Source of the DNA: Basidiobolus meristosporus CBS 931.73
Taxonomy: Eukaryota > Fungi > Basidiobolomycota
Length of the DNA stretch: 64,000 nt
Reading direction: 5' to 3'
Assembly (NCBI GenBank): GCA_002104905.1
Contig: MCFE01000143.1
Span: forward strand, 62,001 to 126,000
Below, piece by piece: positions 3,017 to 64,000 of this stretch. Under the pieces are notes generated by a model. That model saw only the letters and a list, made by a program, of their open reading frames with translations, ran no database searches and had not been told where the DNA came from. Position numbers and translations under genes: made by a program. The stretch's first letter is position 1. Each line of letters begins with the position of its first letter.

Positions 3017-3030
3017 TGGTGTTTCTTCAT

Positions 3031-3490
3031 TTAAGTTACATATATTGGCTTCCAGATATGATGGAATTTAATTCTGTTAATTAGATTTTTCATTTCTTCT
3101 CCTGGCAGCATCATTGTAGTAAAGAATTTTTGTCTCAGATACATTTTCTTAGCAGCTGAACATGACTGGTAGGTGTCTTCTAATGCATTCCAGGCATTCT
3201 TTGCCATTTTTGCTCTTGAGCATTGAATTAGCAATTTGTCTTTAACATTACGGCAAATGCAGTTAAAGGCACTTTGTTCTTTCTTCTGGTACTTTAAGGC
3301 TTCCTCTTCCACATTTTTAGGAGGGCATTCTTCTCCCATGACAATATCCCAAAGGCCTCTTTCTTGTAGCAGCATCTTCATCTTCACCTTCCACACTTGG
3401 TAGTTAGATCCATCTAACTTTTCAGCAGAGGGAAAAATTCCAGTAGTAGCAGTAGTAGACCTTGCAGAGAGTGACAGCTCAGGGCTCATA
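3031..3490 (-). pseudogene. copia A1 gag, N-terminal part only
   Basis: KLDGSNYQVWKVKMKMLL and AKNAWNALE copia gag motifs. It is fused directly to the pre-integrase region by a 787-bp deletion relative to copy A5. Confidence 0.9.
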
Positions 3491-3493
3491 ACC
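3482..3493 (-). promoter_or_regulatory. Primer-binding site, internal (half-molecule) tRNA-iMet type
   Basis: GGTTATGAGCCC immediately follows the LTR end on the minus strand. The same motif occurs at 14812, 18991-19003, 37009-37020 and 53586-53597; this PBS type is known from Drosophila copia and Ty5. Confidence 0.85.
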
Positions 3494-3842
3494 TGTTGTA
3501 AGAGTCTTGGAGATATTGGAAGTGATTGGGAGGACAAGTAGATTATGTGGTTTTCACTTAATGATTTATTGAATGTAAAAGTAGTATTTATACTTTTACA
3601 TGGTCTTGGCATTACAAACATGTAGAATAGGTTAAGGAAGGTCCCAAGAACATGTGTGCATAGTTTGGGGCTGTTTGGACAACTTTGAATATTTTCATGT
3701 TCTGGGTACCTGGTATTTTGGTGGAAATATTCTAAGTAAATCCCAACAAGGAATTTAGTCAGTATTCACTAGGATTTGAAGGTGATGATGTATGTGACTA
3801 AGTTACGTGAATATTTAAGTGGAAATACAAATTTTTACAACA
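3494..3842 (-). repeat. Family A LTR (5' LTR of A1)
   Basis: 349 bp with TGTTGTAA...TTACAACA inverted termini. Homologous LTRs at 1-292, 6163-6512, 14460-14811, 27547-27898, 37021-37370, 48193-48801, 53598-54077 and 54300-54647. Confidence 0.95.
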
Positions 3843-11000: not shown

Positions 11001-11597
11001 AGCCATACCATATGGAGATTTATACTTGAAGACATCATATGCATATTTGGCTGCATCCAACAGTTTGTTGCTGACAGAGGGGAGATGACATCCCAAATGA
11101 TCCAGGAGTTGTGCTCAAAGTACAAGATACACATTGCTTTTACAACAGCTTACCACCCTCAAGCCAATGGAATGACAGAGAGAGGACATGGACCATTGGT
11201 GAACTCTTTTGTCAAGACCTGTGAGAATAATAAAACACTGTGGCCACAGCAATTATATCTTGCACTCTGGGCAGATGGAATTACTACCAAGAGAACAACT
11301 GGATTATTGCCATTCAAACTACTCTATGGACATGACTGCATACTATCAGTTGAGTTAAACACAGTCACTTGGTACTCATTGAATTGGAGATTCAATATGC
11401 AGACTGAAGACCTCCTTGCAACTTGCATACAGCAACTTGATCACCATGACTTGAATATCAGCAGAGCTGCTGAACAACTTAAGGATACACAACTGAAGAA
11501 CAAGGTGCCCTTTGACAAATCACACCCAACAAGACCAAAACCACTATCACTAGGAGACCCAGTATTACTCTATGATTCCACCTTGGACAAACAATGA
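8040..11597 (+). pseudogene. gypsy B pol: protease (8040-8819), RT (9015-9911), RNase H (9860-10483), integrase (10626-11597)
   Basis: IDSGSE protease site; LYSGYDQ, LSQGATNS and VFVDD RT motifs; TVDTSP, ELLGVV and ETDAKPL RNase H motifs; GHRG...C..C zinc finger; YHPQANGMTER integrase. Broken into several frames. Confidence 0.9.
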
Positions 11598-24500: not shown

Positions 24501-25250
24501 CTCAGTCATCCAAGTAGACACCAGCAACTGGAACAAAGATGTCAAGAGGCACAGACCAAAGTATCTCAAAGTGCAGAAAAGATGAAGCAGAGATTTGATA
24601 AGACTATAGCACCAGAAGCATTGACAGTTGCAAACTTTGTATTGCTAAGAAACAACACTTGGAAGAAGTTTGAGCCACAATGGACAGGACCATTCAAGAT
24701 CATCAGAGAATGTCCATTTGCAACTTGCCAACTGGTGGACATACAAGGTAATATCCGGGAAGACTTAGTGCATAGGGACAGACTCAAGCGTGTAAGACTT
24801 GCTGATAATACCGGACCATCAAGATATTGGAATCACAAGAAAAGAGATTCAGGAGAACCCTCTCAACCTTAGTAGGGGAGAATGTTATGATCTGCCGCTT
24901 GAATGTTTAAGTTAGATCAGTGTTTAGTCAAATCAATTAGTATATGTTTAGGCTATCAGTATATCAGTATTATCTATGAAATCAGTAGCATTAGTCAGCA
25001 AATGAATCAGCAGATCCTTATCAGACAGAAATAGATACATTAATTAGGATCTTATTGGGTGATGATGATGCAATCAAATGAGTCATCAGCCACAACCTAC
25101 ATTAGGAAATACAATTAGTCAGCAATTGATCTGGCAAAATGTATATAAGGAGCTGCTGGAACCTCAATAAAAATCAGTTCAAGTTTTAGTGAATACAATA
25201 CTAGCTAAACTCCCTATTCCTCTACAACTCTTATACCAAGACTTGTAACA
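21531..25250 (+). mobile_element. Ty3/gypsy family D, young, 4-bp TSD CCAG, lacking PBS and gag
   Basis: LTRs 21531-21898 and 24883-25250 (368 bp; about 4 differences seen by eye). PPT AGTAGGGGAGAA at 24871-24882. CCAG at 21527-21530 and 25251-25254. Confidence 0.95.
22083..24872 (+). CDS. gypsy D pol, RT-RNase H-integrase (929-aa open frame)
   Basis: [32 protein letters not shown] zinc finger, GIDFIG and GPF motifs. No chromodomain is visible. A protease remnant (FDLVLGK) lies just upstream. Confidence 0.92.
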
Positions 25251-30500: not shown

Positions 30501-33500
30501 CAGTCTTAGGCTCAAAATATACCATAGGCAGAGTTTCTCACTTCTACAGCAGTGTTCTGACCTTCTGTTGACTAATGGGCATATTTGCTTTTAAAATAAC
30601 TTTTCCTTATTTGGAAGTCATGTTCCTTTCTGAGAAAATTTTTCCAAATATAGAAATACTGAGCTCCCCTTTAACCTAAAGGGGTGTGTTGTAGAAGTCT
30701 CTAAAGGGGTCTTTAGACCTGAAGGGGTGTCTAAAGGGGTGTTCTTAGAGTAAAGGGGCTTCTGGTAGTGGTCTCTAAAGTGGACTTTACACTAAAGGGG
30801 CTTCTTAAAAGGGACTTTTCTGACAGAAAAGAGGTAGTTTTTGTAGAACTTAGATTGGATTCTTGTGAGCTTTGCGGTCTCTTTACTGATGTAGTATTGA
30901 TCAATGTCAGAATACTCAACAGTGCAAGTGATGCAGGGGAAGTCTTATAACCTTTAAACATGTAATTGTAGTGTGAAGATTCTGGAAAGAGAGGCTCTCC
31001 TTTATTTTTCAGCTGGGGAAGTCATATATATGAGATTTCTGAAGGATCAAAGTTTTTGGGCAATTGCACAAGCAATGCACATGATACAAAGCTAAAACAT
31101 TGCAGTGGTGCAGATTGGACATAGGCGCAGCACCTGTGAAAATTTCATGTATCCCATAACAACAGTACCATGTATGAGTCCGGTCAAATCCCTATATGCA
31201 ATGAGACAACAACTGTTGAAACAAATGCCAAGGATAGTTTATGGAGCCAAGTGAGCCCAGTAATCCATCTACTGGTGAATGATGTAATGTTGTGGCTAGA
31301 GAAGTGGCGTGTTTCCACTAATAGCAGTAATGGGGGCTTTGAGGATTTATTACTACTTCTTGCCAAAATTATTCCAAGATGCAACTTACCATGTATATGG
31401 TATAAGTGGACAACCGTCATGTGGCTGGCAACATATGACCCAGAGACTGTCCTGATTCCAGCATGCGTTAACAGTTGAATGGCATTCATATCCAAAAATG
31501 CTACCATTGAAACATGTCCAAATTGTCAGGAATCCACCACCATTGCAGGAAAACATTGCTCACACTCTGGATATATTCCAGTCATACCCCATCTGAGGAA
31601 GCTAATGCAGTCCAACAAATATAGCAAAGCTATATAGTACCACACTCAGTATCAATTAAGCGCAAACATATCCAATATATTTCATGGCAAACATTAGAAA
31701 CAGCTCAGAAGCAAGGGTACTTTGAAGGTATGTATGACCATGCCTTTGCTTTAGCACTTGATGGATTCTCATAATACAAGTACTCTACTAGCAAATCCTG
31801 CTGGCCAGTGATTCTCATCAATCTGAGTCTGCTACCCATCCTATGGTATCAGAGCAATAATCTGATTGTAGTCTTACTGGTATCTGGGCCTAAATCACCA
31901 CCCAACCTGGATAGCTACCTGTATCCATTGCTGGATGAATTTTGTATGCTTTCCAGCAGGGTAATAGTGAATGGCTGTCATGTAAAAGCACATATTATTA
32001 TCTGCATTGGAGATACCCCAGCCATCAGCAAGATAGCAGGTTATTCCGGGCACAATGAATGGTATTGCAGTCAAATGCATGAGATCCAGGGGATTTATTC
32101 CATAACTCACACACATTATCATGACCCAAACACCAGCACTAAGTACATCTTCTTTCCACAGAGCAAATGCAAAGAAGTCAGTGTGCAATTGCAGCAAAGT
32201 TGGCAGGCTGTACACTGTTGGACAGAAAATGGAATTAACTGGAAACCAGAGATACTTAAGATAGAGGGTATCTGTTGGAGCAAAAGCTTTCCACTAGGAG
32301 CAATGCATTTGCTTTTCAGCAATATCCGTATACTGAAGAGCAAGTTTTGCATGAGGCATCTCAAGCTAAACAAGCCCTTCAGATACTGGAGAAATTTGAA
32401 CAGATTGGCAAGATATTGCAGAGTAACCACTACCCTAAGTACTTCTCATGGGCTCCAATCAATATTCATACACATATGCAACAATACAAATGCAAAGACT
32501 GGATGAACTGGATATGTATTTATTCAAGTGGTGTTTAGAAGCCATTCCTATCAAGAGTACATTGGAAGCATTGGGAGTCATATGTGATCATTGTAAGAAT
32601 ATTTATCCAGAAGCAGATCACCAATGCCAACTTGACGCATATATAGCTGTGGTGCAAGGAGTTTGTGATAGGACTTGAGCAGATATACTACAAACTTAAA
32701 GCTGAATATGTAGATCTCTGCCGCTACTGTATTCATTCTCTACTCCATCTTGCCCAGTTTGTGGAGAATATTGGACCTTGCTTCACCTTTTGGATTTTCC
32801 TATGGAGTGGATGTGTAGGAGATAGGAAGACAAGTCAAGTTGCAGGTACTATCATATCTCAATCTCATCAAGAATACTACCTTCAAGTCTGTCATGGATG
32901 TGATGAGTTGGTACATGCAGGACAGCCCGGAAGAGTTGAAAATACTGAGGACAAATGTGCACATGGAGTCACCTATGCCTATGGCATTAAGAAGCTAAGT
33001 AGCCCAAATGTGTGGGTAATCAGTTAAGTAATGCAAAGTTGGGTTAGATGCAACAAGCAACTAATTTTTATCAGGAAAACTCTACCAAGGTATGCATGAT
33101 TTCTCATGGTCATAAGCCAACTTCCACACCATTCAATACAGTATTCACACAAACAAAAGCCAGAGCACACCTATAAGGGGGACTAGAATCCAGCAGGGAG
33201 AAGCAATATATTGGCTATATACCAAGAAGTTCTTCTCAGATATTCAGGAGGTATTCATGGCAGGAGTGGTGACAACCAAGCATATGTTTGCAAGATGTAT
33301 ATGTTACCAGCAGTACAAGGTATATGGCAACTTTGCAAGTATCACACTAAAAAGCCATAAAGTTGAGGTTATAGAAGTATGTCAATTGCGGCAGGTGTGC
33401 ATGTCTATAGAGGTTAGTAAACAGGAGGCCATAGTTTTTTTTTTGATTTGAACTATATGTGGAATACCCAAGGTAGTAGTTGGTAAGTAAATAAAGAGGG

Positions 33501-36500
33501 GTGATTCCACAGTGGAATATATCAATTGCACAAGGGGAGGTAGAGAAAGGAAATACCACTTGGTAATTGGTATGGTAGCTTTGTACAGAACCAGTGGTAG
33601 ACCATCATACTGCTGATATAATGCCATCAGAGTTTCACAGTGAGGCCATCAAAATACCGTCAAGTTTCTTGCCATATAAGGCAATTGGATGTCCTGGCCA
33701 ATTGGACCTATTTAAAATAGTTATAGAGTGCTAAAAGACCACAACAGTACCATGCAAATATTGTCACAGCACCAATTAAATATTGTCAAGTTCTATCCCT
33801 TTATTGGTTTGTAAAATCAGCAAAGCACAGTTGTGATCCTGTCATAAGATTGTTAGGAGGGTCACTAATTCCAAGCTGCTGATATTATGATGGTCTCCAA
33901 ATGGGATCCTGATGGCTGATCCAGATTGGATCCACTTGTGGGCCCAAATTATTTTTCATAAGATTTCTTGAATTCCATGAAATTGCTCCTTTATAGTAAA
34001 GAAAAGTGTATCTTGTAGTGGGTCTTCTGTCTTCCAAATTTTGTCCCCAATCAGCATTAGAGTATCCCACAAAATCCTGTTCTGAGTCCTTTTAAGTGTA
34101 TCTTAAGCAGATATCAGCAGTTCCTTTTAGGTGTCTAAAAATCCACATAACTGCTGCAATATGATCAGACCATAGTTCTGATTATGCTGGCTGACAGCTT
34201 CCACTGAATGTGAGATATCAGGATATGTTCCAAGCATGATGTACATCCAACAGCAGGCCATAGATTGATGAGGAATGTCAGGGCTTTCAAATGGCAACTG
34301 GCTCTCTGAATTTGGTTGAGTTGTGACAAAGCTTAGGCTTGTCTCCATTGAGGTAGCTGCTGGTTTACAGTCTTTCATTTGGCACTTCTTTAGTATATCT
34401 TGAATATACTTGGATGGGCTTAGGGTAGTATTCTGGGTACTTATGTCTATGGAGAACTTAGTCCCTAAGGAGTAACTGAGTTTTCCTAGATTGGATATCT
34501 AGAACTCTTTAGATAGGCTGGATTTAGTCTCCTCCAATGTTACTAGGTTATTGGCAGCTTTAATAAGATCATCCATATATAGAGCTAATAGAACTGGATT
34601 TGCTCTATCTGACTTATAGTATATACTATAGTTAGCATTACTCCTTTTGAAACTCAGAGATTGCAAATAAGAATCTATCTTGCAATTACAGGCTCTTGGT
34701 GATTTTTTGATACTATAGAGTAGTTTTTAAAGCTTGCAGACTAAATGAGGGTTATCTTGGCTAACAAACCCATTGGGCGGGTTCATATACACTTCCTTAT
34801 CAGGTTCTCCATTCAAAAATGCAGTTTTACATCCTATTGATGTACTAAAAACTTATATTTGGCTGCAATAGCCAATATTAATCTGATGGAATTAAACTTG
34901 GCTAGCAGTGCAAAGGTCTCAGTATAATCAAGTCCATTTGTTTGAGAGTATCCATTGGCCACAAGTCTTGCATTTTATCTTTCAATTGAACCATCAGACT
35001 TGTATTTTGTCTCAAAGACCAATCTGCATCCAATTGATTTTTTGCTGACTGGTAACTTGACCAGGTTCCAAGTTTGATATTCCATTGGGGCCTGATATTC
35101 CTCAGCCATTGCAGATCTCCAAAACTTAGTCTGATGGCTATTTAGGGCCTCTTTTGCAGTCTGGGGCTCATCAATATGGACTGAATAGGCATAGGCTAAG
35201 TTTGTACCCTCACTAATATAGTAATTTGGGCTATTTCTTGTTCAATTGGATCTCCAGGCATTTGATACTGGAATGCTCACTTCTGGGATATTCCTGGGCA
35301 CTGACTCTGGCTGACCACAGCTGTAGAGTCCTTTAGAGGGAAAAACCTTTCATTGTTTTGCTCCAATTCAATCCTGACTATTGGTTGACTTGTGATCAAA
35401 TATTTGTCATCATCTAATATCATTTTTTGTGAAAATTTTGAATTTTCATAAAACAACACATCCCTGGACTTGATTGGCTTCTTTGCTTTGGTTTTGCAGA
35501 GTTTGTATGCCTTACTCTCATTGCAGTAGCCCAAAAATATGCATTTTACATTTTTTGGCTAAAATTTTGACTGATTTGCAGGCAGTTTCTTGGCATGTGC
35601 TGTACACCAAAATATTCAATGTTTCTGCTCTTGTCCTGTATCCATACTATGCTGCAAATGGAGTAGAATCACAAATCATTCTGCTATAACTCCATTTTCA
35701 AGGTATACAGCAGTGGCAATGGATTCTACCCAAAAGTCATAGGATAATTCTTGAACATGGATCATAGATGTTGCCATTTACTGATTTTGGCTTCCAGATA
35801 TGATGGAATATAAGTCATCTTCTATAGATTTTGATCTCTGATACCCAACGCAATATGAGCACTATTTTAATCAGTGACCCTGCATCCTGAATTGTCAAAG
35901 CAGAAGCTGAATCCTTCTGCTGTGGCCTAGCTTACAGATAGTAGGTTCTTGGCTATTTCTGGTACTTGGAGTACTTCTTTAAAAGTCAGTATATGGCTTC
36001 CTTTGCTGCTTCTGAGGTTTACTTGTAAAGTTCCTTCTCCCTCTGCGTCAAGTGTTCTATTGTCATCCATGAAAACCTTCTTGATTGGAATTTCTTGATA
36101 TTGGGTAAAAAGTTCTTTTTGGTGTGCAAAGTGTAGAGATGCTCCATAATCAATATAGCACATCTGAGAATCCTTGTTTGTGGTCATATCTAGTGCAGAT
36201 ATGAATAGACTATGTTCAGTTGTTGCAGTATTTCCATATTCAGGCTTCTTTTGCTGATTATCTCTCTTTTTGATACACCAGTCTGATGTGTGTCCTTTCC
36301 TTTTGCAGTAGTTGCAAAACAGGTTGCTGTTGCCTTTGTGGGGTCTTGGGTACCTTCTTTGTTGGTTATTACTGCTTAATAAAGCATTTTCATCTTCCTT
36401 CCTATTGGCACTAAATTTTCTTAATTCTTCATCAAGGAGCCTTCCATACACATAATTTAAGGTCAAATCTTCAGTTCTGGACTCTAGGGCTGCTACAAGG

Positions 36501-37370
36501 CCTTGCAGCTTGTCTGTCAGCCTTTTTGGAATGGTGACTATCACATCCTCATCAGTAGCTGGTATGCCCACAAATTCTATTTCATACACCAGCAGGTAAT
36601 TCTGCTAATTAGAATTTTCATTTCTTCTCCTGGCAGCATCTTTGTAGTAAGAATTTTTGTCCAAGGTACATCTTCTAAGCAGCTGAACATGACTGGTAGG
36701 TTTCAACTAATGCCTTCCTGGTGTTCTTTGCCATTTTTGCTCTTGAGCATTGAATTAGCAATTTGTTTTTAACATTAAGGCAAATGCAGATAAAGGCACT
36801 TTGTTCTCTCCTCTGATACCTTAAGGCTTCCTCTTCCACATTTCTAGGACGGCATTCTTCTCCCATGACAGTATCCAAAAGGACTCTTTCTTGTAGCAGC
36901 ATCTTCATCTTCACCTTCCACACTTGGTAGTTAGATCCATCCAACTTTTCAGCAGAGGGAAAAGTTCCAGTAACAGCAGTGGTAGACATTGTGGAGAGTG
37001 ACAGCTTGGGGCTAATAACCTGTTGTAAGAGTCTTGGACATATTGGAAGTGAGTTGGGAGAACAAATAGATTATGTAGTATCACTTGGTTATTTATTGAA
37101 TGTCAAAGTAGTATTTATACTTTTACATGATCTTGGCATAACAAACATGTAGAATAGGTTAAGAAAGGTCCCAAGAACATGTGTGCAAAGTTTGGGGCTG
37201 TTTGAACAGCATTGAGAATTGTCATGTTCTGGGTACCTGGTATTTTAATGAAAATATTCTAAGTAAATCCCAACAAGGAATTTGGTCAGTAGTCTCTAGA
37301 CTTTGAAGGTAATGCTCTAAGTGACTAAGTTAGGTAAATATTTAGGTGTAATTTCAAATTATTCACAACA
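27547..37370 (-). mobile_element. copia family A copy A3 (older), split by an inserted CACTA element
   Basis: 3' LTR ~27547-27898 plus PPT; internal region 33964-37008 (RT, partial integrase, gag ORFs 35927-36589 and 36675-36989); degenerate PBS; 5' LTR 37021-37370. Confidence 0.8.
27916..33963 (+). mobile_element. Inner CACTA/En-Spm (transposase tnp2) element, decayed
   Basis: tnp2-like remnants on plus at 30070-33027 (YDPETVLIPACVNS; NLSLLPILWYQSNNLIVVLLVSGPKSPPNLDSYLYPLLDEF; IGDTPAISKIAGYSGH). Divergent ORF2 remnants on minus at 27960-29820. Terminus at 33963. Confidence 0.8.
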
Positions 37371-48812: not shown

Positions 48813-50996
48813 CTAAATGTTCATACTGACTAGTCCTAATTTTGACCTAAGATATTCAAACTTGTCTCTGGCTAATGGTTTGGTTAATATGTCTGCAATC
48901 ATTTCATCTGTGGGACAGTAAACTAAGCTAACTAAGTTATTCTCTATAGTTTCACATATGAAATGATGTCTAATATCCATGTGCTTGGTTCTAGCATGAA
49001 AAGTTGGATTTCTACCTAATTGTATACATCCTTGATTATCTTGAAATAAAGTAATAGGCGTTTTTTGACATAGGCCTAAATCTGTAAAAAGCTTTCTTAG
49101 CCACATTGCTTCTTTTGTAGCTTCACAGGCTGCCATATACTCTGCCTCTGTGGTAGAAAGTGCTATGGTTGGTTGCTTTCTTGAATTCCATGAAATTGCT
49201 CCTTTACAGTAAAGAAAGGTGTATCCAGTGGTGGATCTTCTGTCTTCCAAATTTTGTCCCCAATCAGCATCAGAGTATCCCACAAGATCCTGTTCTGAAT
49301 CCTTATAAATGTATCTTAAGCAGATATCAGCAGTTCCTTTTAGGTATCTAAAAATCCGCTTAACTGCTGCAATATGATCAGATCCATAGTTCTGATTATG
49401 TTGGCTGACTACTCCCACTGAATATGAGATATCTGGACGTGTTCCAAGCATGATATACATCAGACTGCTGATCATAGATTGATAAGGAAAGTCAGGGCTT
49501 GAAGATGGCACCAAGCTCTCTTGATTTGGTTGAGTTTTGACCAAGTTAAGGTTTGTCTCCATTGGGGTAGCTGCCGGTTTACAGTCTTCCATTTGGTACT
49601 TCTTTAGTATATCTTGAATATACTTTGATTGGCTTAGGGTAATAGTCTGGGTACTTCTGTCTATGGAGAACTTAATCCCTAAGTAGTAACTAAGTTCTCC
49701 TAAATCAGACATCTTGAACTCCTTAGATAGGCTGGATTTAGTCTCTTCCAATGTTTCTAGGTTATTGGTGGCTATAATAAGATCATCCACATATAGAGCT
49801 AATAGAACTGGATTTGCTCTATCTGGCTTATAGTATATACTATAGTCAGCATTACTTCTTTTGAAACTCAAGGATTCCAAATAAGAATCTATCTTGCAAT
49901 TCCAGGCGCTTGGTGATTGTTTGAGATCATATAGTGACTTTTTAAGCTTGCAGACCAAATGGGGGTTATCTTGGTCAACAAACCCATCAGGCTGGTCCAT
50001 ATACATGTCCTCATCAAGTTCTCCATTCAAAAATGCAGTTTTTACATCCATTTGATGAATAAAAAACTTATATTTGGCTGCAATAGCCAATATTAATCTG
50101 ATGGAATTAAACTTGGCTACTGGTGCAAAGGTCTCAGTATAGTCAAGTCCTTTTGTTTGAGAGTATCCTTTGGCTACAAGTCTTGCTTTGTATCTTTCAA
50201 TTGTACCATCAGCCTTGTATTTTGTCTTGAAGACCCATCTGCATCCAATTGATTTTTGGTTGATTGATAATTTGACTAAGTCCCAAGTTTGAATTTCCAT
50301 CAGGGCCTGATATTCCTCAGTCATTGTAGGTCTCCAAAACTTTGTCTGAGGGCTATTTAGGGCCTCTTTTACAGTCTGGGGTTCATCAACATGGACTGAA
50401 TAGGCATAGGCTAAGTTTGTACCCTCATTGATATAGTAATTTGGACTATTTCTTGTCTGATTGGATCTCAGGGCATTTGATACTGGAATGATCACTTCTG
50501 GGATATTCCTGGGAACTGATTCTGGCTGAACCATGGTTGTAGAGTCCTCTGGAGTGAAAAAATTTTCATTGTTTTGCTCTGATTCAACCCTGATAATTGG
50601 TGGACTTGAGATCAGATTTTTGTCATCATCTGATGTCATTTTTTGTGAAAATTTTGAATTTTCATCAAACAACACATCCCTGGACTTGATCAGCTTCTTT
50701 GCTTTGGTATTGTAGAGTCTGTATGCCTTACTCTCATTGCAGTAGCCCAAAAATATGCATTTTACACTTTTTGGCTCAAATTTTGACTGATTTCCAGCCA
50801 GTTTTTTGGCATATGCTGTACACCCAAATATTCTTAGATGTTCTGCACTTGGTCTGTATCCATACCATGCTTCAAATGCAGTAGAATCATGAAGTAGTCT
50901 GTTATAACTCCTATTTTTAAGGTATACAGCAGTGGCAACTGATTCCACCCAAAAATCATAGGATAATTTTTGATCATGGATCATAGATCTTGCCAT
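48813..50996 (-). CDS. copia A5 integrase C-terminus-RT-RNase H (727-aa open frame)
   Basis: RYKARLVAKGY, HQMDVKTAFLNG, YVDD, YSDADWG and ADILTKPL motifs. Confidence 0.9.
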   Translation of the reverse strand: MARSMIHDQKLSYDFWVESVATAVYLKNRSYNRLLHDSTAFEAWYGYRPSAEHLRIFGCTAYAKKLAGNQSKFEPKSVKCIFLGYCNESKAYRLYNTKAKKLIKSRDVLFDENSKFSQKMTSDDDKNLISSPPIIRVESEQNNENFFTPEDSTTMVQPESVPRNIPEVIIPVSNALRSNQTRNSPNYYINEGTNLAYAYSVHVDEPQTVKEALNSPQTKFWRPTMTEEYQALMEIQTWDLVKLSINQKSIGCRWVFKTKYKADGTIERYKARLVAKGYSQTKGLDYTETFAPVAKFNSIRLILAIAAKYKFFIHQMDVKTAFLNGELDEDMYMDQPDGFVDQDNPHLVCKLKKSLYDLKQSPSAWNCKIDSYLESLSFKRSNADYSIYYKPDRANPVLLALYVDDLIIATNNLETLEETKSSLSKEFKMSDLGELSYYLGIKFSIDRSTQTITLSQSKYIQDILKKYQMEDCKPAATPMETNLNLVKTQPNQESLVPSSSPDFPYQSMISSLMYIMLGTRPDISYSVGVVSQHNQNYGSDHIAAVKRIFRYLKGTADICLRYIYKDSEQDLVGYSDADWGQNLEDRRSTTGYTFLYCKGAISWNSRKQPTIALSTTEAEYMAACEATKEAMWLRKLFTDLGLCQKTPITLFQDNQGCIQLGRNPTFHARTKHMDIRHHFICETIENNLVSLVYCPTDEMIADILTKPLARDKFEYLRSKLGLVSMNI

Positions 50997-51058
50997 ATCA
51001 ATTATTGATCTGTTAGCTTGTTCTGCTACTCCATTTTGCTGTGGGGAGTATGGTACGG

Positions 51059-51862
51059 TGTGGTAGGGTAAACATACCTCCCACAGACAAGTTTATTCAT
51101 ATAGTCATTATGATATACTTATCCATATTTTATCTTATTAGTATTATCCCATTCTTCTTTTGCCCATATTATCAGTTTTATCCCCATATGATGTTTACCC
51201 TGATTAGTTATTAGCATTAGTTATCCCAGATGTTATTCAGCTTTGTGATCAGTAGATGTATCTATATAAGGCAAGTACCCGCGTCAGTACCTGTGACACA
51301 TGTCCTAGGTCTGTGTTACCATCCCTACCATTTCAATACCATATATGGTATTTCTATGTTGCACAGGTTTCAGACTACTGATTCCTGATTGGTTGAGAGT
51401 GCTGTGCCTTTTAGAACCTTCCAGGACATTCTTGGCATATTTTTAGCTCATGGTGATGTCATCAAGAATTCCACTGATACCTAGAATCTTCTAGAACCGT
51501 GTCATTAGTAATCACTTGGCAATCAGAAAAAGTATTTAAGGGAAAACAATCCCTCATCAATAAATCATCCCTTCTATCAGTAACACTTCTGCCTTATTGA
51601 TTAGCAGTTGATCACTGCACCTGCCTTCAACAGTACATCTAAGACCTGCCATCAAGGAGCTTTTCAGGGTAGTGCACAAGACACACAGAGGCCTTTGGAG
51701 ACACTTGGAGCACCTAGGAAGCTAAAGAAGCAGGAGCTTTTACCATAGTGACATATTGACAAAGACACCAGCAGTTTAGACACAGAGGTTATTGCACCCA
51801 TCAGACACCTCACACACCTTGAGTTGTGTAGCTTCTCCCAGGAGTACCTCTACACCACCACA
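51059..51862 (+). mobile_element. Solo gypsy-type LTR (family C, related to B at its 3' end), 4-bp TSD ACGG/ATGG
   Basis: 804 bp, TGTGGT...ACCACA. The last ~70 bp resemble the B LTR end. The host integrase sequence tatggt-acgg-tagtctc is restored on removal. Confidence 0.88.
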
Positions 51863-54077
51863 ATGGTAGTCTCTTGCTTTATCCCACGAATGTTGCAGAA
51901 GTGGATGAAGAGTTTTGAGGTATATTCTCCACCATTGTCAGAGCGTATTTTCTTGATTTTTTCACCAGTTTCTCTCTCAACCATGGCTTTAAACTCCCTG
52001 AGCTTAGACAGAGCTTCTTCCTTTCTCTCCATGAAGTAGACCCATGTGTATCTTGTATAATCATCAATAAAAGTGACTAAATACTTCATCCCGCCAAAGG
52101 ATAAATTTTGCATAGGTCCACACAGATCTGAGTGAATTAGATCTAATTTTTTCTTAGTTTTTGATTAACCCAGAGCTCTTGAACAATTGTCTGGCTTGTT
52201 TCCCATATATGCAGGCTTCACAGTGCTCCAAATCAGCTGGGGGATCAACTTTCACTCCAGAAATTAGCGGATCTTTGATCATTTTATGCAAATAATCAAA
52301 ATTGATGTGTCCAAATCTCCTGTGCCAAAGCATTGGTGTTTCTTCATTTAAGTTACTTATATTGGCCTCCAAATATGATGGAATGTAAGTCAACTTGTAT
52401 AGATTCTGATCTCTGATGCCCAAAGCAATATGGGCACCATTTTGATCAGTGATCCTGCATCCAGAGTTGTCAAAACCAAAACTGAGTCCTTCTGCTGTGG
52501 CCTTGCTTACAGAGAGTAGGTTCTTGGCTATTTCTGGTACATAGAGTACTTCTTTGAAGGTCAGTGTATGGCTTCCTTCACTGCTTCTTAGGTTTACTTG
52601 GATAGTTCCTTCTCCCAATGCATCAAGTGTTCTGTTGTCACCCATGAAAACCTTCTTAATTGGAATTTCTTGATATTGGGTAAAAAGTTCTTTTTGGTGT
52701 GTAAAGTGTTGAGAAGCTCCAGAGTCAATATACCACGTCTGAGAATCCTTGTTTGTGGTCATATTTAGTGCAGATATGAATAGTCTATCTTCAGTTGTTG
52801 CAGCATTTCCATATTCAGGCTTCTTTTGCTGATAATCTCTGTTTTTGAGACACCGGTCTGATGTGTGTCCTTTCCTTTTGGAGTAGTTGCAAAATAGGTT
52901 GCTGTTGCCTTTGTAGGGTCTTGGGTACCTCCTTTGTTGGTTATCATTGCTTATTAAAGCATTTTCTTCTTCCTTCTTATTGGCGCTTGATTTTCTTAAT
53001 TCTTCATCCAGGAGCCTTCCATATACGTAATTTAAGGTCAAATCTTCAGTTCTGGACTCTAGGGCTGATACAAGGCCCTGAAACCTGTCTGTCAGGCTAT
53101 TCAGGATGGTAACTATCATATCCTCATCAGTAGTTAGTACACCCACAGATTCCATCTCATCTACCAGCAGGGTAATTCTGTTAATTAGATTTTTCATTTC
53201 TTCTCCTGGCAGCATCTTTGTAGTAAAGAATTTTTGTCTCAGATACATTTTCTTGGCAGCTGAACATGACTGGTAGGTGTCTTCTAATGCCTTCCAGGCA
53301 TTCTTTGCCGTTTTTGTTCTTGAGCATTGAATTAGCAATTTGTCCTTGACATTAAGGCAAATGCAGTTAAAGGCACTTTGTTCTTTCTTCTGGTACTTTA
53401 AGGCTTCCTCTCCCACATTTTTAGGAGGGCATTCTTCTCCCATGACAATATCTCAAAGGCCTCTTTCTTGTGGCAGCATCTTCATCTTCACCTTCCACAC
53501 TTGGTGGCTAGATCCATCCAACTTTTCAGCAGAGGGAAAAATTCCAGTAATAACAGTAGTAGACCTTGCAGAGAGTGACAGCTCAGGGCCCATAACCTGT
53601 TGTAAGAGTCTTGGAGATATTGGAAGTGATTGGGAGGACAAGTAGATTATGTGGTTTTCACTTAATGATTTATTGAATGTAAAAGTAGTATTTATACTTT
53701 TACATGATCTTGGCATTACAAACATGTAGAATAGGTTAAGGAAGGTCCCAAGAACATGTGTGCAAAGTTTGGGGCTGTTTGGACAACTTTGAGAATTTTC
53801 ATGTTGTGGGTACCTGGTATTTTGGTGAAAATATTCTAAGTAAATCCCAACAAGGAATTTGGTCAGTATTCTCTAGGATCTGAAGGTAATGATCTAAGTG
53901 ACTAAGTTGGGTGAATATTTAGGTGGAATTACAAATTTTTACAACAGTATTTTGGTGAAAATATTCTAAGTAAATCCCAACAAGGAATTTGGTCAGTATT
54001 CTCTAGGATCTGAAGGTAATGATCTAAGTGACTAAGTTGGGTGAATATTTAGGTGGAATTACAAATTTTTTACAACA

Positions 54078-55914: not shown

Positions 55915-57190
55915 ATGGAAACCTACACTGTCTCAGTAAAAGATACTTGGCACGAGCATGATGGCGTGACTTTCTACACAAAACTCTTTGAGGTAGAATA
56001 CATTAACTTAATTTCAAGGCTTCTTCTCATTCATCCGACCACTGTAGGTAACTCCTAAACCAAGAGCCACGGTGACACTCATTCACGGATTGGGAGAGCA
56101 CTGTGACCGTTATGAGGAGCTTGGAAAATACTTAGGAGAAAGAGGAATTCAAGTGTTTACATACGACCAACGTGGTTTTGGGAAAACCGGGTACCGTAAC
56201 CCTCCCTTGGGCCATAGCGGTGGTTTCGAAAAGGTGCTACAGGATGTCGATTACTTTGTAGAGCGGTCGAGCTTTTCGGATCTGTCGGTCCCTCATTTTC
56301 TGGTATTGGCGAGTTAGATATGTAAGCATCCGACCCGATTGTAATATTAGATCGTTTTGTAGTTTGGTCACTCGATGGGTGGTATGATTGTTTTAAATTA
56401 CGGTGCCGTGTATAGCACACGCGAAATAGCCGGAATCATCGCATCAGGTGCAGTAGGGCAATTGATTAGTAAGTGAATGTTGGCTATAGCTGATACTTTG
56501 GCTACGTAGCACCCTGTATTCAAGCTGGGAAAGGTTATATCGTTTCTGGCATCCAAGCTAAAGCTCTCGGGTTCTTGGGATCGATCCCGATTATCAACAC
56601 GCTTCCGATTCAATCCAACATCAGTTAAGGCCTATACCCAGTGCGTCATCACGTCCACCAGTACTAACCCGTCCAGTAGAGGCTGAACATCTCAGTTTTA
56701 ATGAAAAATCCAATCAAGAGTATATGGGCAGCATGTATAACTTTGGCTACGCATCACTCAGTTGCCGTAAGTGGCCCATCACCTCATTTTATCACCCGCC
56801 ATGTTAACTCGCGCTTCAGTTTCGGATATCTTTTATTACGGGAAACTACTTCTCACTGATCGTTACAAAAACTTTTTGACTCCAGTGCTGCTGACACATG
56901 GTGAACAAGACCAGATCACCAGGTAAACAGAGTGTCATACTTTTATATCTTGCGATATACTAATCAATGCAATAGCTGTGCGGCAACAACAGAGTTTCAT
57001 GACCTTCTGGAAGCAGACAAAACTCTCAAGATCTGGCCAAACTCAGCTCACGAACGTACGTAAACCCAAATGCTATCAATCATTCAGCCATTAATATAAG
57101 TTTGCAGTGCACTTCGAGGACAACAAACAGGAAGTAATGGAGTACTATTACCAATGGCTGGACAACAAAATTCACCGGGAAGAAAAGTAG
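55915..57190 (+). CDS. Alpha/beta-hydrolase, monoacylglycerol lipase/lysophospholipase family (Hydrolase_4, Yju3-like); 8 exons
   Basis: Exon 1 55915-55992, exon 2 56048-56302, exon 3 56363-56447, exon 4 from 56510, with short GT-AG introns throughout. The spliced frame gives LIHGLGEHCDRY, YDQRGFG, FGHSMGG (nucleophile Ser), LTHGEQD (Asp) and AHELHFE (His). Confidence 0.9.
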
Positions 57191-57518
57191 GCCAGAAGCT
57201 CGAATTCTTATGTTCTGCATAGCCTAATTTGCATCTATTTTCCAGCTGGCCCAGCTTGGCTAAAGCATCCAATATTGACTGAGGTGCTCTTCCAGGATTC
57301 ACTAAGGGTATCTAACTATAACGGACTATTAAACCGCAAATTCTGTCAATACTACAAGCTGTCTACGCCTTTCAAGGTCCCGATATTGATAAACAATTGG
57401 GCATCAATGATTAAATATATACGTATCCCCACATGGTTTTCAATTTGAGTGAAACTGGTTGTAGAGATAAAAGAATCATTGCCATGACCTTTATTCAGTA
57501 TTGCATGCATTTTCACAT

Positions 57519-57782
57519 TTACCAATTATCCTCGTCATGGTGGCCCGATTCATCGCCAGGACCATCCTCATCCTGGTCGTCTCCGTAGTCACAGAATGGA
57601 CCAGTGGCATCCTTTTCCCGGCAAACTGTCTGCTCTCCGCACATAGTCTCCACCCATTCATCGTTGACGCAGCGGATAATAGCTCGGTCATCCTCTGTGG
57701 AGCATTTACTTTCAAGGTTGTTGCAAGCCAGAACAATCTGACTCAAAAGAGCAAGCACAAGAATGGTTGCGTGGAACTTCAT
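57519..57782 (-). CDS. Small secreted 6-Cys CBM19-like protein 1 (87 aa, acidic tail)
   Basis: Signal-peptide-like MKFHATILVLALLSQIVLA; C-x6-C-x10-C-x4-W-x4-C-x5-C-x9-C; D/E-rich tail. Confidence 0.88.
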   Translation of the reverse strand: MKFHATILVLALLSQIVLACNNLESKCSTEDDRAIIRCVNDEWVETMCGEQTVCREKDATGPFCDYGDDQDEDGPGDESGHHDEDNW

Positions 57783-58135: not shown

Positions 58136-58411
58136 ATGAAACTCTACGCCACGCTGATATTCTTCGCTATTTTGAGTCAGGTTGCGCATGCCTGTCAAAG
58201 TATGGAAAGTAAGTGCTCCACTGAGGATGATCGTACAATCGTTCGCTGCGTCAATGATGAATGGGTCGAAACCAAATGTGGAGAGGGAACAGTCTGCCAA
58301 GAAAAGCGTCATACTGGGCCGTTCTGCGATTATGAAGGACATGATGACTGGGAGGAGGATAATGATGGAGAAGATCATGGTGATGGTGATGATGAAGAGA
58401 GCGAAGATTAA
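58136..58411 (+). CDS. Small secreted 6-Cys CBM19-like protein 2 (91 aa, acidic tail)
   Basis: Signal peptide ending AHA|C; CVNDEWVETKCGEGTVC core; tail DDWEEDNDGEDHGDGDDEESED. Confidence 0.88.
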   Translation: MKLYATLIFFAILSQVAHACQSMESKCSTEDDRTIVRCVNDEWVETKCGEGTVCQEKRHTGPFCDYEGHDDWEEDNDGEDHGDGDDEESED

Positions 58412-59182
58412 AAAGATGCAAGACGTTCGAGTTGTATTTGGCTTACAATAAACAGAAGATATTCTCTTGAACAATGTTTCTTTTCGCCAGATTTAAAGGA
58501 TCTCGTGCCGAAAATATCCATCTTTTGTCATCTAAATTGTGACTACTGTGACAGGTAATATCCCGAGTACTTGGATATTTGAAGATTGTATGTTACCACA
58601 CGAGTGGTACTGAAGATTGTATATTACCATGCGAGTGGAGGTGCTTTCATCTTGGCCCACCTCCATCTCCTAATCACCCTGCCATCATGTAATACTAAGC
58701 TTTGTACATAAACCTGTAAGTTCAGCTTCAAAGGTGATAGTAGATAGGATTACTGCACATATTGCACTTCTGCATGGAAATGCTCCATTACTCTACCCGT
58801 CGCAGTTTCTGCTACTCCACAATTCTGCAGCTGCACATTTACAATTATAGAAATTAAGTTGGTAACTCGTTATCACACCATTTGCCGTCATTCCAAGCTT
58901 TTGCAGTGGTGTCTTACTCCTTAATACCTAAATTTATCTCTCCATTTCACTCCAGTGCTAGGGGGTCTGTGATACTTCTCCGGATGGATGTAGGGGATTT
59001 GCAATGGTAAGGACTTTTAGAAGCGTATTGGTCATTGATACGCAGTTATGGGGAAAGGAGCACTATATTTAGAAACTATTAGTAACCACATAGAGATACC
59101 ATTTACTACTATAAATACCTTGAAAGCTACTTCCCAAATGACATACTCACAGCCTATCCTCTACTTCAACTACGATCATACC

Positions 59183-59452
59183 ATGAGAATCTGCACTGCA
59201 TTTGTTGTTCTTGCCTTTCTGAGCCAGGTAGTGATGGGATGCACCCAAAACGAAAGCAAATGTTCCTCAGAGGATGCCCAGACTATCGTCCGATGCGTCA
59301 ACGATGGCTGGGTTGATACGAAGTGCGGACAAGGAACAGTCTGTCGTCAAGGTGACCACACTGGGCCATTTTGTGATCACGAGGATGTGGAAGACGATCA
59401 AGAGTGGGGCCAAGATGATGATGAGGAGGAGGAGGAGGAGGACAATGAATGA
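59183..59452 (+). CDS. Small secreted 6-Cys CBM19-like protein 3 (89 aa, poly-D/E tail)
   Basis: The start is placed at MRICTAFVVLAF by homology with the paralogues. CVNDGWVDTKCGQGTVC core. Confidence 0.87.
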   Translation: MRICTAFVVLAFLSQVVMGCTQNESKCSSEDAQTIVRCVNDGWVDTKCGQGTVCRQGDHTGPFCDHEDVEDDQEWGQDDDEEEEEEDNE

Positions 59453-59589: not shown

Positions 59590-59680
59590 TCGTTGTCACA
59601 TTAACTATCAGTCCTTGTCATTGTCCCCATCACCGCTTGATCAGAAGGTCTAGAGCAATTGGTGCAGCATAGACTCTCAT
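59590..59680 (-). pseudogene. Truncated paralogue of the secreted family
   Basis: MRVYAAPIALDLLIKR* followed by GDNDKD-like tail remnants, with the Cys module missing. The family upstream motif ctgatttatattcacc is retained at ~59742-59757. Confidence 0.65.
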
Positions 59681-60099: not shown

Positions 60100-60396
60100 C
60101 TAGTGACCATGGTGGCGGTCATCCCAGTGCTCGTCGTGGTCTCCATCCCAGTGACCGTCATGATCCCCATCCCAATGATCATCGTGATCCCAGCCATCAT
60201 GGTCACAGAATGGTCCGGTGTGATCCTCCTCATGACAGACTGTCTCCTTGCCACACTTCGTCTCCACCCAGTCGTCGTTGACACAGCGGATAATGGTGCG
60301 GTCATCCTCGGACGAGCACCGGCTTTCATCGTGGGTGCATCCAATCACCACCTGGCTGAGAAAGGCCAAAGCAATCAGTGCAACGTAGACTCTCAT
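60100..60396 (-). CDS. Secreted CBM19-like protein 4 with His/Asp/Trp repeat tail (98 aa)
   Basis: MRVYVALIALAFLSQVVIG|CTHDESRC...; tail DHDGW-DHDDHWDG-DHDGHWDG-DHDEHWDD-RHHGH. Confidence 0.9.
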   Translation of the reverse strand: MRVYVALIALAFLSQVVIGCTHDESRCSSEDDRTIIRCVNDDWVETKCGKETVCHEEDHTGPFCDHDGWDHDDHWDGDHDGHWDGDHDEHWDDRHHGH

Positions 60397-60467
60397 GATT
60401 TGGCTGTTGTATTCGAAATATGGAAAGTAAGGCACTGATGGGTATCATTCAACGGCATCCTTGACTG

Positions 60468-60475
60468 ATTTATAT
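60468..60475 (-). promoter_or_regulatory. Conserved TATA-like box of the tandem units
   Basis: ATATAAAT lies ~72-79 bp upstream of the ATG, with identical context at 61478-61485 and 63473-63480 and a variant at ~62465-62471. Confidence 0.55.
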
Positions 60476-61085
60476 TCACCAGCTCACGCGATATGAGCTT
60501 CCGTTAAATTGTAGTGCCAATAGAACTCACTGAATACAAATGAATCGCATCGATCATCCTTACCCTGCTTTGATAGCCTAGACTCCTTAATTTTGCCAAC
60601 TGACTGCTACTGCACACGCACTCGCCAATTTCCCCCGCCTGATGGATGTCTTGGAGAGACTCGAGTGGATAAAAGAGACCCTATGTCATTCGGCCTTGAC
60701 GCATATTCCAGAAGCATACTGCATTTAGGTGATGTTGTGAAGACTGGTGTCATGTGACATAAAAAGTGGCTATCCGACTCGGGATTTCCTGGATAGCATC
60801 AGTCTACATTCCATTGAAGTTTATTTGATAAATGCCATACCTTCAGCTAAATATTATTGTGAAATATGCTTAGCACTTGGTATAACAACACGGCGTCATC
60901 AAGTATGTATCACAACCACAATCCTCATGATTCAAACATGCGATTGGATGTTACAGGACAGACGAAGGTAAGGTGAATAAAGACAACAAATGATGTAGGA
61001 AGTGATTTATTATTAAGTGCAATCAGCGACAGCAGGTCTTTAAACCAGTACAAAGCTCTTTATATCGTTCACAAAGTAATCCTGA

Positions 61086-61406
61086 CTAGTGATCACGGTG
61101 GCGGTCATCCCAGTGCTCGTCGCGGTCTCCATCCCAGTGACCGTCGTGATCCCCATCCCAGTGACCGTCATGATCCCCATCCCAATGATCATCGTGATCC
61201 CAGCCATCATGGTCGCAGAATGGCCCGGTGTGATCCTCCTCACGACAGACTGTCTCCTTGCCACACTTCGTCTCCACCCAGTCGTCGTTGACACAGCGGA
61301 TAATGGTGCGGTCATCCTCGGACGAGCACCGGCTTTCATTGTGAGTGCATCCAATCACCACCTGGCTGAGAAACGCCAAAGCAATCAGTGCAACGTAGAC
61401 TCTCAT
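61086..61406 (-). CDS. Secreted CBM19-like protein 5 with His/Asp/Trp repeat tail (106 aa)
   Basis: Same architecture with one extra 24-nt/8-aa repeat. Confidence 0.9.
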   Translation of the reverse strand: MRVYVALIALAFLSQVVIGCTHNESRCSSEDDRTIIRCVNDDWVETKCGKETVCREEDHTGPFCDHDGWDHDDHWDGDHDGHWDGDHDGHWDGDRDEHWDDRHRDH

Positions 61407-62098
61407 GGTTTGGCTGTTGTATTTGAAGTATGGAGAGTAAGATACTGATGGGTATCATTCAACGGTATCCTTGACTGATTTATATTCACCAGCTCACGCG
61501 ATATGGGCTTCCGTTAAATTGTAGTGCCAATAGAACTCACTGAATACAAATGAATCGCATCGATCATCCTTACCCTGCTTTAGTAGCCTAAACCCTGTAA
61601 TTTTACTGACTAGCAGCTGCTACTACTACATACAAACACACAAATCCCCCGCATGGTGAATATCTTTGAGTGGCTCGAACAGATGAAGGAGACCTCATGT
61701 GGATCGACAACAGTGCGTATACCAACCCCATACAGTATTTAAGTGATCTGGTGAAGGATGGTGTCAAGTGGCATCAAGTTATCTTGCATACCCCCATTAT
61801 ACATTCTCTTGAACTATCTGCTGATTTTCAATGTCGTGAATGCCATTTTAGCAGTTACTACAAAAAGCTGTGGTGATCAAGCACGTACTGTAGCGGCAAT
61901 TTCGAATTTCGAATATATGATCCTATATTGTTGTCGAGAATAGCTCAAACCAGGCAACGACAAATTACTGAGATAAGAACTATTATACGATATTATTTTA
62001 TTATTAGGCATTATCTGTGTCATCAGGTCTAGAAGCCGACATAAGGTTCTCAATGTTTTTCTTCGACAATACCACTATCATAGACAACGCAATCTTGA

Positions 62099-62395
62099 CT
62101 AGTGATCATGGTGGCCGTCATCCCAGTGCTGGTCATCGTCTCCATCCCAGTGCTCATCGTGGTCCCCTTCCCAATGGTCATCGTGATCCCAGCCATCATG
62201 GTCGCAGAATGGCCCGGTGTGATCCTCCTCACGACAGACTGTCTCCTTGCCACACCTCGTCTCCACCCAGTCGTCGTTGACACAGCGGATAATGGTGCGG
62301 TCGTCGTCGGACGAGCACCGGCTTTCATCGTGGGTGCATCCAATCACCACCTGAATCAGAAGGGCCAAAGCAGCCAGCACAACATAGACTCTCAT
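62099..62395 (-). CDS. Secreted CBM19-like protein 6 with His/Asp/Trp repeat tail (98 aa)
   Basis: Same architecture; the most diverged of copies 4-7. Confidence 0.9.
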   Translation of the reverse strand: MRVYVVLAALALLIQVVIGCTHDESRCSSDDDRTIIRCVNDDWVETRCGKETVCREEDHTGPFCDHDGWDHDDHWEGDHDEHWDGDDDQHWDDGHHDH

Positions 62396-63104
62396 GATTC
62401 GATCGTTGTTTTGGCAATAACAAAAAAGCGGTGCTGATGGGTTTCATTCAACGAAATTTTGGCTCTTATATCTACGGACTCATGCAATGCTAGCTTCCGC
62501 AAAGTTGTAGTGCCAACAGAATTCACTTTATTTAAACGAATAGCATCATGCTTCTTTTCCCTGCTTTGATAGTTTAGACTCCTTATTTTTACAAAATGCC
62601 TAGCACTATCACTACTACACACACGCACGCACGCCCATAAATCCCCCCTGCTAGTAGAACGTCTGGAAGTGTATCGAACGGATATAAAAGACGCTGTGTT
62701 GATCGACACTAATGCATACTAATTTCACACTGCATTCGAGTGATGTTGCGAAAGATGGTGACATGAGACATAAGAGAGTAGTCACCTGACACGCGTTGTC
62801 TTAGATAGCCTCATACTACTATTGATTTTAATATGGTATGTTACTTTACTTTCTATGCATTCTAGCACAGTAAGGGTAGCAGCTACTAAAAACATATGAC
62901 CATCAAGTACATCGTAGTGGTGATTGTTCACATTCGAATACGTGATCTGATATAGCCATCCAAAATGACAAAGGACAAGTATTACAAGATTGCATGAAAT
63001 TATTTATTGTTAAGTACTATCAGTATAAGCAGGCCTATAAATCAACGCAGAGTTCCGAATACCTTTCTACAACAATGCTGGCATTATATGATAGGCAGCT
63101 CTAG

Positions 63105-63401
63105 CTAGTGATCGTGATGGCGGTCATTCCGGTGCTCGTCGTGGTCTCCATCCCAGTGACCGTCATGATCCCCATCCCAATGATCATCGTGATCCCAGCC
63201 ATCATGGTCACAGAATGGCCCGGTGTGATCCTCCTCACGACAGACTGTCTCCTTGCCACACTTCGTCTCCACCCAGTCGTCGTTGACACAGCGGATAATG
63301 GTGCGGTCATCCTCGGACGAGCACCGGCTTTCATTGTGGGTGCATCCGATCACCACCTGGCTGAGAAAGGCCAAAGCAATCAGTGCAACGTAGACTCTCA
63401 T
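63105..63401 (-). CDS. Secreted CBM19-like protein 7 with His/Asp/Trp repeat tail (98 aa)
   Basis: Same architecture; start placed at MRVYVAL by homology. Confidence 0.9.
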   Translation of the reverse strand: MRVYVALIALAFLSQVVIGCTHNESRCSSEDDRTIIRCVNDDWVETKCGKETVCREEDHTGPFCDHDGWDHDDHWDGDHDGHWDGDHDEHRNDRHHDH

Positions 63402-64000
63402 GGTTTGGCTGTTGTATTTGAAGTATGGAGAGTAAGGCACTGATGGGTATCATTCAACGGCATCCTTGACTGATTTATATTCACCAGCTCACGCGATATG
63501 GGCTTCCGTTAAATTGTAGTGCCAATAGAACTCACTGAATACAAATGAATCGCATCGATCATCCTTACCCTGCTTTAGTAGCCTAGATTCCCTAATTCTA
63601 TTCACCGGTTACTACTGCTACTACTACTACTACTACACACACATGCAAGCGGCTCGAATGGATGACGGAGAATATCCGTTTATCGGCACCAGTGCATGCA
63701 GCAACCTCATACTGCATTTGTGTGGCGTTTTGAAGGATGGTGTCAAGTAGCATCAGCAAATGATCCTGAATAACCCCACTCTACTTTCTATTGAACTATC
63801 GTTGATTGCAAATAACTACAAAAGGCTGTGACCATCAAGTATAAATCGTATTGGCATTTGTCCGGATTCGAATACGTGATCTTATATGGCTATCAAGAAT
63901 AGCACAAGACAGGCAAAGGCAAGGTATTGAGAGACGAGAGCTCTCGTGTAATATTGCTTTATTAATAAGCGCAACCAGTGGTAGCCTATCTATAAATAAA

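Follow-up and report, generated by a model that had tools for sequence, protein, structure and literature searches.

CBM19 modules (PF03427) occur in fungal chitinases, yeast Cts1 among them. Here we analyse an array of small genes in which a divergent module of this type is joined to a tail of Asp, His, Trp and Gly. The array belongs to Basidiobolus meristosporus CBS 931.73 and was met at the end of a 64,000-nucleotide (nt) stretch of contig MCFE01000143.1 (assembly GCA_002104905.1, positions 62,001 to 126,000 of the forward strand), which we call the window. It comprises 12 copies in about 12 kilobases (kb): g1-g7 lie in the window and g8-g12 beyond its edge. The genus inhabits amphibian and reptile guts and is able to cause human infection; very little is known of its surface biology. 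As judged from sequence, the family is genus-restricted and largely unannotated, and combines a known kind of module with a new kind of tail. The module shares with CBM19 a six-cysteine core of about 45 residues and is linked by a profile match to P0005, a Basidiobolus protein that passes the Pfam cut-off. Unlike the CBM19 modules of chitinases, it stays below this cut-off, comes without an enzyme and is fused to the Asp/His/Trp tail; its binding to chitin is predicted.

Avr4, Der p 23, tachycitin and the CBM14 module of chitotriosidase resemble the array proteins as small secreted single modules and provide their best structural matches, although with weak scores (Z 3.6-5.0). The array family, however, has no Pfam CBM_14 match, and the CBM14 proteins do not carry a His/Asp/Trp repeat tail. 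The tail itself recalls the octarepeat of the prion protein (PrP; PHGGGWGQ), with its eight-residue His/Trp/Gly unit, its disordered region and its variable copy number. In PrP, the octarepeat uses its His residues as ligands for Cu, Zn, Ni and Mn, and phase separation is under the control of the spaced Trp residues (PMC11126799). There is no sequence kinship between the two: the array tail is strongly acidic, has two His per unit, is found in a fungus and sits C-terminally on a carbohydrate-binding-type module, so that the likeness is an analogy only. Alternating His and Asp/Glu in disordered stretches are also seen in ZnuA-type His-rich loops, the zincophore Pra1/Aspf2, Hpn and the histidine-rich Ca-binding protein. 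These share no domain with the array proteins, and they lack regular Trp and a chitin-binding module. In squid beak, the His-rich and the chitin-binding proteins are separate molecules, and the His-rich ones are rich in Gly, Ala and His and basic to neutral. His-rich disordered chemistry on a chitin scaffold would be common to beak and array, but the array tail is polyacidic and part of a single fused chain, and no kinship exists.

Array genes, repeat tails and the cysteine module

Seven complete small open reading frames (ORFs), g1-g7, are present within the last 6.5 kb of the window (Table 1). They can be aligned across their first 64 residues, which comprise a signal-peptide-like start followed by a 45-residue module with six cysteines. 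The N-terminus begins with a basic residue, followed by a hydrophobic stretch and then by small residues ahead of Cys20; the signal peptide was judged by eye, without a predictor. The initial annotation had described a chitin-binding-type module fused to the tail in one chain of about 9-10 kDa, and we indeed found a CBM19-like module and mature masses of 9.4-10.4 kDa. When seven upstream regions were aligned, ATATAA (about -79) and TATTGG (-126) emerged as shared coding-strand blocks, which may act as promoter elements. ORFs on the plus strand over g4-g7 (e.g. 61089-61448) were considered as an antisense reading and rejected as mere mirrors of the repeat, since the minus strand is the one favoured by conservation, by the substitution pattern, by the signal peptide with the Cys module and by the TATA/CCAAT blocks. 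Genes g4-g7 are real genes for proteins of 9-10 kDa, and export of these proteins is predicted.

Tandem Repeats Finder detected arrays of period 24 in the 3' ends of g4-g7, all of them in frame and with 2.5-4.0 copies. A 24-nt, eight-residue tail unit of variable copy number had been noticed in these genes before, with a claimed three to four copies, and is thus recovered. All nine genes of the His/Trp class in the B. meristosporus array show this in-frame period, which is therefore not due to chance. The tails of g4-g7 are 34-42 residues long and are made of Asp, His, Trp and Gly. That of g5, with 42 residues, contains 10 His, 17 Asp and 5 Trp, which matches the initial counts precisely; g5 is longer than g4 and g7 by exactly one 8-codon unit. 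Trp residues are spaced by 6, 8 and 8 residues, with one further spacing of 8 in g5. Tails of g1-g3 are rich in Asp and Glu, with one or two His and one Trp each, and their composition agrees with the mostly Asp/Glu character ascribed to them earlier. In an AlphaFold2 model, for which an alignment of 18 family sequences was used, the tail had a predicted local distance difference test (pLDDT) score of about 50 and is thus predicted to be intrinsically disordered.

A second species, B. ranarum, carries tails of the same class. All 16 His/Trp-class tails of both species have a His fraction of 0.21-0.29 and an acidic fraction of 0.41-0.56. Those of B. ranarum are longer, with 38-72 residues, and lack the 24-nt period; their His and acidic fractions are 0.21-0.24 and 0.51-0.56, and a Trp occurs every 6-24 residues. 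They keep the opening D-H-x-x-W-D-H-D-x-x-W, and the first two Trp are at a fixed spacing of 6 in both species. HW pairs are absent from them and HxxH motifs number one or two per tail; an octarepeat with a Trp spacing of 8 is confined to B. meristosporus. The exact His-x2-His-Trp register of the initial annotation is not conserved between the species.

The unit D-G-D-H-D-G fits the calcium-binding motif Dx[DN]xDG, which is found in many families (PMC3123361), and the tails are 41-56% acidic. Such loops, together with runs of Asp, might bind calcium or nucleate mineral in the manner of acidic matrix proteins. We regard this as improbable: the strict motif was found in only six of the 19 tails scored, namely B. 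meristosporus g1, g4, g5 and g7 and two of the seven B. ranarum tails, and is absent from the other eight B. meristosporus genes. Furthermore, calcium binding would leave the conserved His unexplained.

A word search of databases with the whole protein returned only three Basidiobolus proteins, all hypothetical: two from B. meristosporus CBS 931.73 and a single one from B. ranarum. With the tail alone, only P0001 and P0002 were matched among proteins of 67-213 residues, so that no relative outside the genus was detected in this size range. Pfam gave no match to the tail, the ESM Atlas no usable look-alike, and a look-up of the exact g4 and g5 products found none on record. Nor did we find a paper that names the array genes or a design of module plus tail. 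One metagenome match (L003) was rejected, as it was a chance match of 15 residues in an off-frame ORF of a bacterial NADH-dehydrogenase contig.

The cysteines of the module, C20, C27, C38, C48, C54 and C64, are invariant across all copies of both species, and its core reads C..N[DG].W....CG.GT.C. Three of 18 members matched Pfam CBM_19 at E<1, the best score of a member on its own being 14.5 bits (g2). No other Pfam family was matched among the array proteins, a zincophore (Pra1/Aspf2/Zps1) domain was not found, and a sequence search of the PDB gave nothing meaningful. A family profile built from 15 modules was used in a HMMER search of 1.84 billion representative proteins and matched P0005, a protein of 251 residues with four modules, at E 1.8e-12. 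Otherwise it matched Basidiobolus family members and, over short partial stretches, two giant repeat proteins of bacteria. Together with P0010, its homologue in B. meristosporus, P0005 passes Pfam CBM_19 at 42.4 bits, and both match CBM_14 too. Comparison of the family alignment with that of P0005 by hhalign gave a probability of 93.5% over 45 columns (E 2.3e-7) and placed every cysteine in register. We file the module as a divergent CBM19 with predicted chitin binding.

In the AlphaFold2 model, the module adopted five strands (pLDDT 74-88). Ordered by Z, its structural matches were Aplysia EHEP (5.3), Der p 23 (5.0), Avr4 (4.8) and chitotriosidase CBM14 (4.8), followed by Blo t 12 (4.3) and tachycitin (3.6). 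Both structure searches ranked CBM14-type chitin binders at the top, and seven of the nine best matches in the wide search were of this type. Stand-alone modules that are predicted to be secreted and whose predicted fold resembles Avr4 and other CBM14 proteins bring to mind an Avr4-type shield. The module would then coat wall chitin against chitinases or immune recognition, and the tail would be only a negative, hydrated coat in which His is secondary. The dosage of 12 gene copies would suit a stoichiometric coat, and g1-g3 do bear plain acidic tails. Nevertheless, we hold a shield of this kind to be unlikely, since it explains neither a His content of 21-29% and the retention of Trp in 16 tails from two species, nor the survival of specific His positions through saturating synonymous change.

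Two observations on modules of this type may be added. P0005 and P0010 (K493DRAFT_373193) are secreted proteins of 251-258 residues with four bona fide CBM19 modules, encoded elsewhere in the genome, and they have a short Gly/Ser/His linker with three consecutive His ahead of the last module. In the array, residues 23-25 of the g3, g5 and g7-g12 precursors form an N-E-S sequon at the start of the module, a possible site of N-glycosylation; g4 and g6 have Asp in place of the Asn (D-E-S).

Selection on the tail and its history

Between the two species, the module showed synonymous differences (pS) of 0.6-0.96 versus non-synonymous differences (pN) of 0.07-0.2. When g4-g10 were compared with g11 and g12, the synonymous sites of the module were saturated (pS about 0.84), and 9 of 17 identical non-Trp codons of the tail differed synonymously. 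Despite this, 20 of the first 23 tail residues were identical. Neutral simulations of the tail (0.6 changes per site, 2,000 runs per setting) yielded a mean identity of 0.26-0.34 and a maximum of 0.65. Because the residues were kept to an extent beyond these simulations while synonymous sites saturated, the tail is under purifying selection. A repeat composition evolving neutrally, which the initial annotation had named as the outcome that would speak against it, is rejected. Having been kept by selection through saturating synonymous change, the tail does something.

The tails might instead be low-complexity by-products of replication slippage without a function, carried by otherwise functional or decaying genes. 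Indeed, the repeat number differs between the near-identical paralogues g5 and g7, and within g4-g10 the tail varies more than the module (18 of 31 versus 8 of 45 codons). In view of the 20 retained residues, far past the neutral simulations, we find this explanation extremely improbable; the reading frames are moreover all intact, and the composition is kept in the second species. Among the young copies g4-g10 alone, the minimal changes in the tail amounted to 10 synonymous versus 12 non-synonymous ones, a modest signal of selection, and turnover of units blurs the tail alignment there. The strong evidence for selection thus comes from the older comparison of g4-g10 with g11 and g12.

As far as the sequences can tell, the selected features are composition and coarse patterning, not the H-x2-H-W register. 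As the register is not kept in B. ranarum, bulk properties of a disordered region would fit better than a defined metal site.

Concerning the origin of the tails, a maximum-likelihood tree was calculated from the first 198 nt. It is weak and unrooted, with only one of its 14 inner branches well supported. In this tree, g3 adjoins g4-g10 (92/91) and g1 and g2 group with His/Trp-rich copies of B. ranarum (84/92), so that the acidic tails do not form a basal group. His/Trp-rich tails are not limited to one side of the tree or to one species. An evolutionary transition from acidic tails to regularly spaced His-x2-His-Trp, as put forward initially, is therefore not upheld by this tree; a secondary loss of His would be at least as likely an origin of the acidic tails. 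The regular 24-nt unit looks derived in B. meristosporus, and we propose that the tail grew by slippage or unequal exchange of this unit.

Candidate functions

Our preferred reading, to which we give about an even chance of being right, is that the array proteins form a chitin-tethered, cation-binding and pH-responsive polyanionic brush. The signal peptide would export the protein from the cell, and the CBM19-type module would hold it on chitin, either of the fungus's own wall or of surrounding chitinous material. The tail, with 8-17 His and 13-26 Asp, is presumably selected for a composition in which His residues are about half as numerous as acidic ones and Trp recurs at intervals; it would offer many weak His/Asp sites to divalent cations (Zn, Cu and Ni; Ca via Asp). 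Its net charge would swing across the pH range of His titration. Model pKa values put the g5 tail at a charge of about -15 at pH 7.5, -5 at pH 5 and about 0 near pH 4.2, and the His-poor g3 tail at -7.5 at pH 4. Metal binding is established chemistry for loops rich in His and Asp, and disordered stretches of this kind bind Zn or Ni with modest affinity (review PMC9175090; PMC8561739). The analysis shows how the genes are built, how far the family extends, what the module is related to, that the tail is predicted to be disordered and that it is under purifying selection; we infer secretion, chitin binding, metal binding and pH switching.

Several observations weigh against this reading. The H-x2-H-W register is not kept in B. 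ranarum, which argues against a defined metal site, and the paralogues g1-g3 do without His, so that His is not essential to every member. The module alone remains under the gathering cut-off of Pfam CBM_19, 20.1 bits. The structural matches are weak (Z 3.6-5.3; Foldseek E 0.17-1); such scores are to be expected for 45 residues, and the matches are coherent. No transcript-derived copy of the array proteins is on record, and the neighbouring genes (three of the PTR2 family, an alpha/beta hydrolase and retrotransposons) show no link to metals.

The calculated charges also bear on another possibility, in which the tail is a pH-gated sticker: spaced Trp would act as stickers and His/Asp as a charge switch, leading to condensation, self-association or a chitin glue at lower pH, with metals being incidental. 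Passage through an animal gut or adhesive spore material would be conceivable settings. The g5 tail would go from about -15 at pH 7.5 to about neutral at pH 4.2, with the g3 tail still at -7.5 at pH 4, and Trp is kept in both species with the first two residues at spacing 6. For the PrP octarepeat, phase separation is governed by the spaced Trp and not by His or copper (PMC11126799). We consider a sticker possible but doubt it, as the acidity of the array tail far exceeds that of known coacervating His-rich proteins and cation-pi contacts would lack a basic partner region, the module being acidic too. It would in any case be compatible with metal binding and not exclude it.

Beyond the preferred brush, a more daring proposal draws on the analogy with PrP. 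The tail could be a new kind of chitin-tethered element for metal handling and pH switching. As the fungal equivalent of the prion octarepeat, it would load or buffer Cu or Zn on chitin surfaces and condense on acidification via its spaced Trp. The combination of a His-rich stretch with a CBM19-like module would then be a genus-wide design. We put this forward tentatively and think it doubtful. If true, Cu or Zn loading might for example serve copper-dependent chitin-oxidising enzymes or counteract metal withholding by the host in the gut. Should either metal capture or a pH-gated change on chitin be real, the proteins would offer a compact natural scaffold of about 10 kDa with a chitin anchor and a tunable repeat, on which repeat number could be studied against metal capacity or phase behaviour. 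Very few His/Trp octarepeats are known, and the proteins would then contribute one from a fungus.

Two other candidates were discarded. Repeat peptides processed by Kex2 do not fit tails without Lys-Arg or Arg-Arg sites, and a cationic antimicrobial peptide with an anionic propiece does not fit a module that is itself acidic.

Extent, annotation and surroundings of the array

Beyond the window edge, g11 corresponds to the annotated protein P0002 and g12 to P0001. The piece of MCFE01000143.1 that carries them (L001) agrees with the window at every base over an overlap of 4,797 nt. Between g10 and g11 there is a thirteenth copy, decayed and interrupted by an in-frame stop (L001:~8265-8333, minus strand, outside the window; tblastn E 0.3). 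The duplicated unit takes up 0.5-0.75 kb of each array period of about 1 kb, promoter included. B. ranarum has at least nine copies on one 13-kb contig (JASJQH010007384.1, L002:1-11289). Of these, one (at 3415) is interrupted by an early stop and another (at 11083) is truncated by the contig end; a single gene (P0003) is listed as called on this contig.

The public annotation of B. meristosporus calls three of the 12 copies, g3, g11 and g12, and its model of g3 (P0004) starts at an upstream ATG at 59048 to give 134 residues. Among the nine uncalled genes, g1, g2 and g10 are without any call, and g4-g9 lie beneath a spliced antisense model of 479 residues, which runs from 60109 to 64000 of the window (plus strand) and on to L004:16564 and has a faint FHA_2 match. 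This model is spurious and was apparently assembled from ORFs that mirror the repeat. An amplified, genus-restricted family has thus been largely missed by public annotation.

Table 1. Positions of array genes and other features, in window coordinates
Feature	Position	Strand	Description	Basis
g1	57519-57782	-	87-residue paralogue; tail Asp/Glu-rich, His-poor	ORF, alignment, composition
g2	58136-58411	+	91-residue paralogue; tail Asp/Glu-rich; weak Pfam CBM_19 match	
g3	59183-59452	+	89-residue paralogue; Glu-run tail; GAG repeat 59423-59442	
Remnant of lost copy, between g3 and g4	59636-59680	-	signal-peptide coding remnant; weak (E 0.6-1.7)	low-stringency tblastn
g4	60100-60396	-	98-residue precursor	ORF, alignment
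g4 signal peptide	60340-60396	-	predicted	
g4 module	60205-60339	-	six-Cys, CBM19-like	
g4 tail	60103-60204	-	Asp/His/Trp tail; stop 60100-60102	
g4 period-24 array	60120-60191		3.0 copies	
g4 putative promoter blocks	60470-60522	-	ATATAA at -79; TATTGG (reverse CCAAT box) at -126	upstream alignment
g5	61086-61406	-	106-residue precursor; 42-residue tail 61089-61214, longest in window	
g5 period-24 array	61106-61201		4.0 copies	
g5 putative promoter blocks	61480-61532	-	same ATATAA/TATTGG blocks	
g6	62099-62395	-	98-residue precursor; tail 62102-62203	
g6 period-24 array	62101-62190		3.8 copies	
g6 ATATAA	62466-62471			
g7	63105-63401	-	98-residue precursor; tail 63108-63209; HRN replaces HWD (last Trp)	
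g7 period-24 array	63137-63196		2.5 copies	
g7 putative promoter blocks	63475-63527	-	same ATATAA/TATTGG blocks	
Retrotransposon/transposase ORFs	567-6022, 16534-17379, 22083-24872, 31808-32506, 35927-36589, 48813-53443			

Three genes of PTR2-family peptide transporters follow directly after the array (L001:11044-20369), and no link between them and the array was found. Just upstream of g1, an annotated alpha/beta-hydrolase gene of 305 residues occupies about 55915-57282 on the plus strand. To the left of the array, the window is filled with retrotransposon ORFs of the copia and gypsy types (RVT_2, RVT_1, rve, gag), several of which are broken, and a tnp2-type transposase fragment is found there too.

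The spacers contain some repeats of their own. A 31-nt tandem duplication (1.9 copies, 89% matches) is present at 58580-58638 between g2 and g3. About 210 nt upstream of g7, a (TAC)9 microsatellite covers 63610-63636; at this place the other promoters have GT- or GTA-rich stretches of differing lengths.

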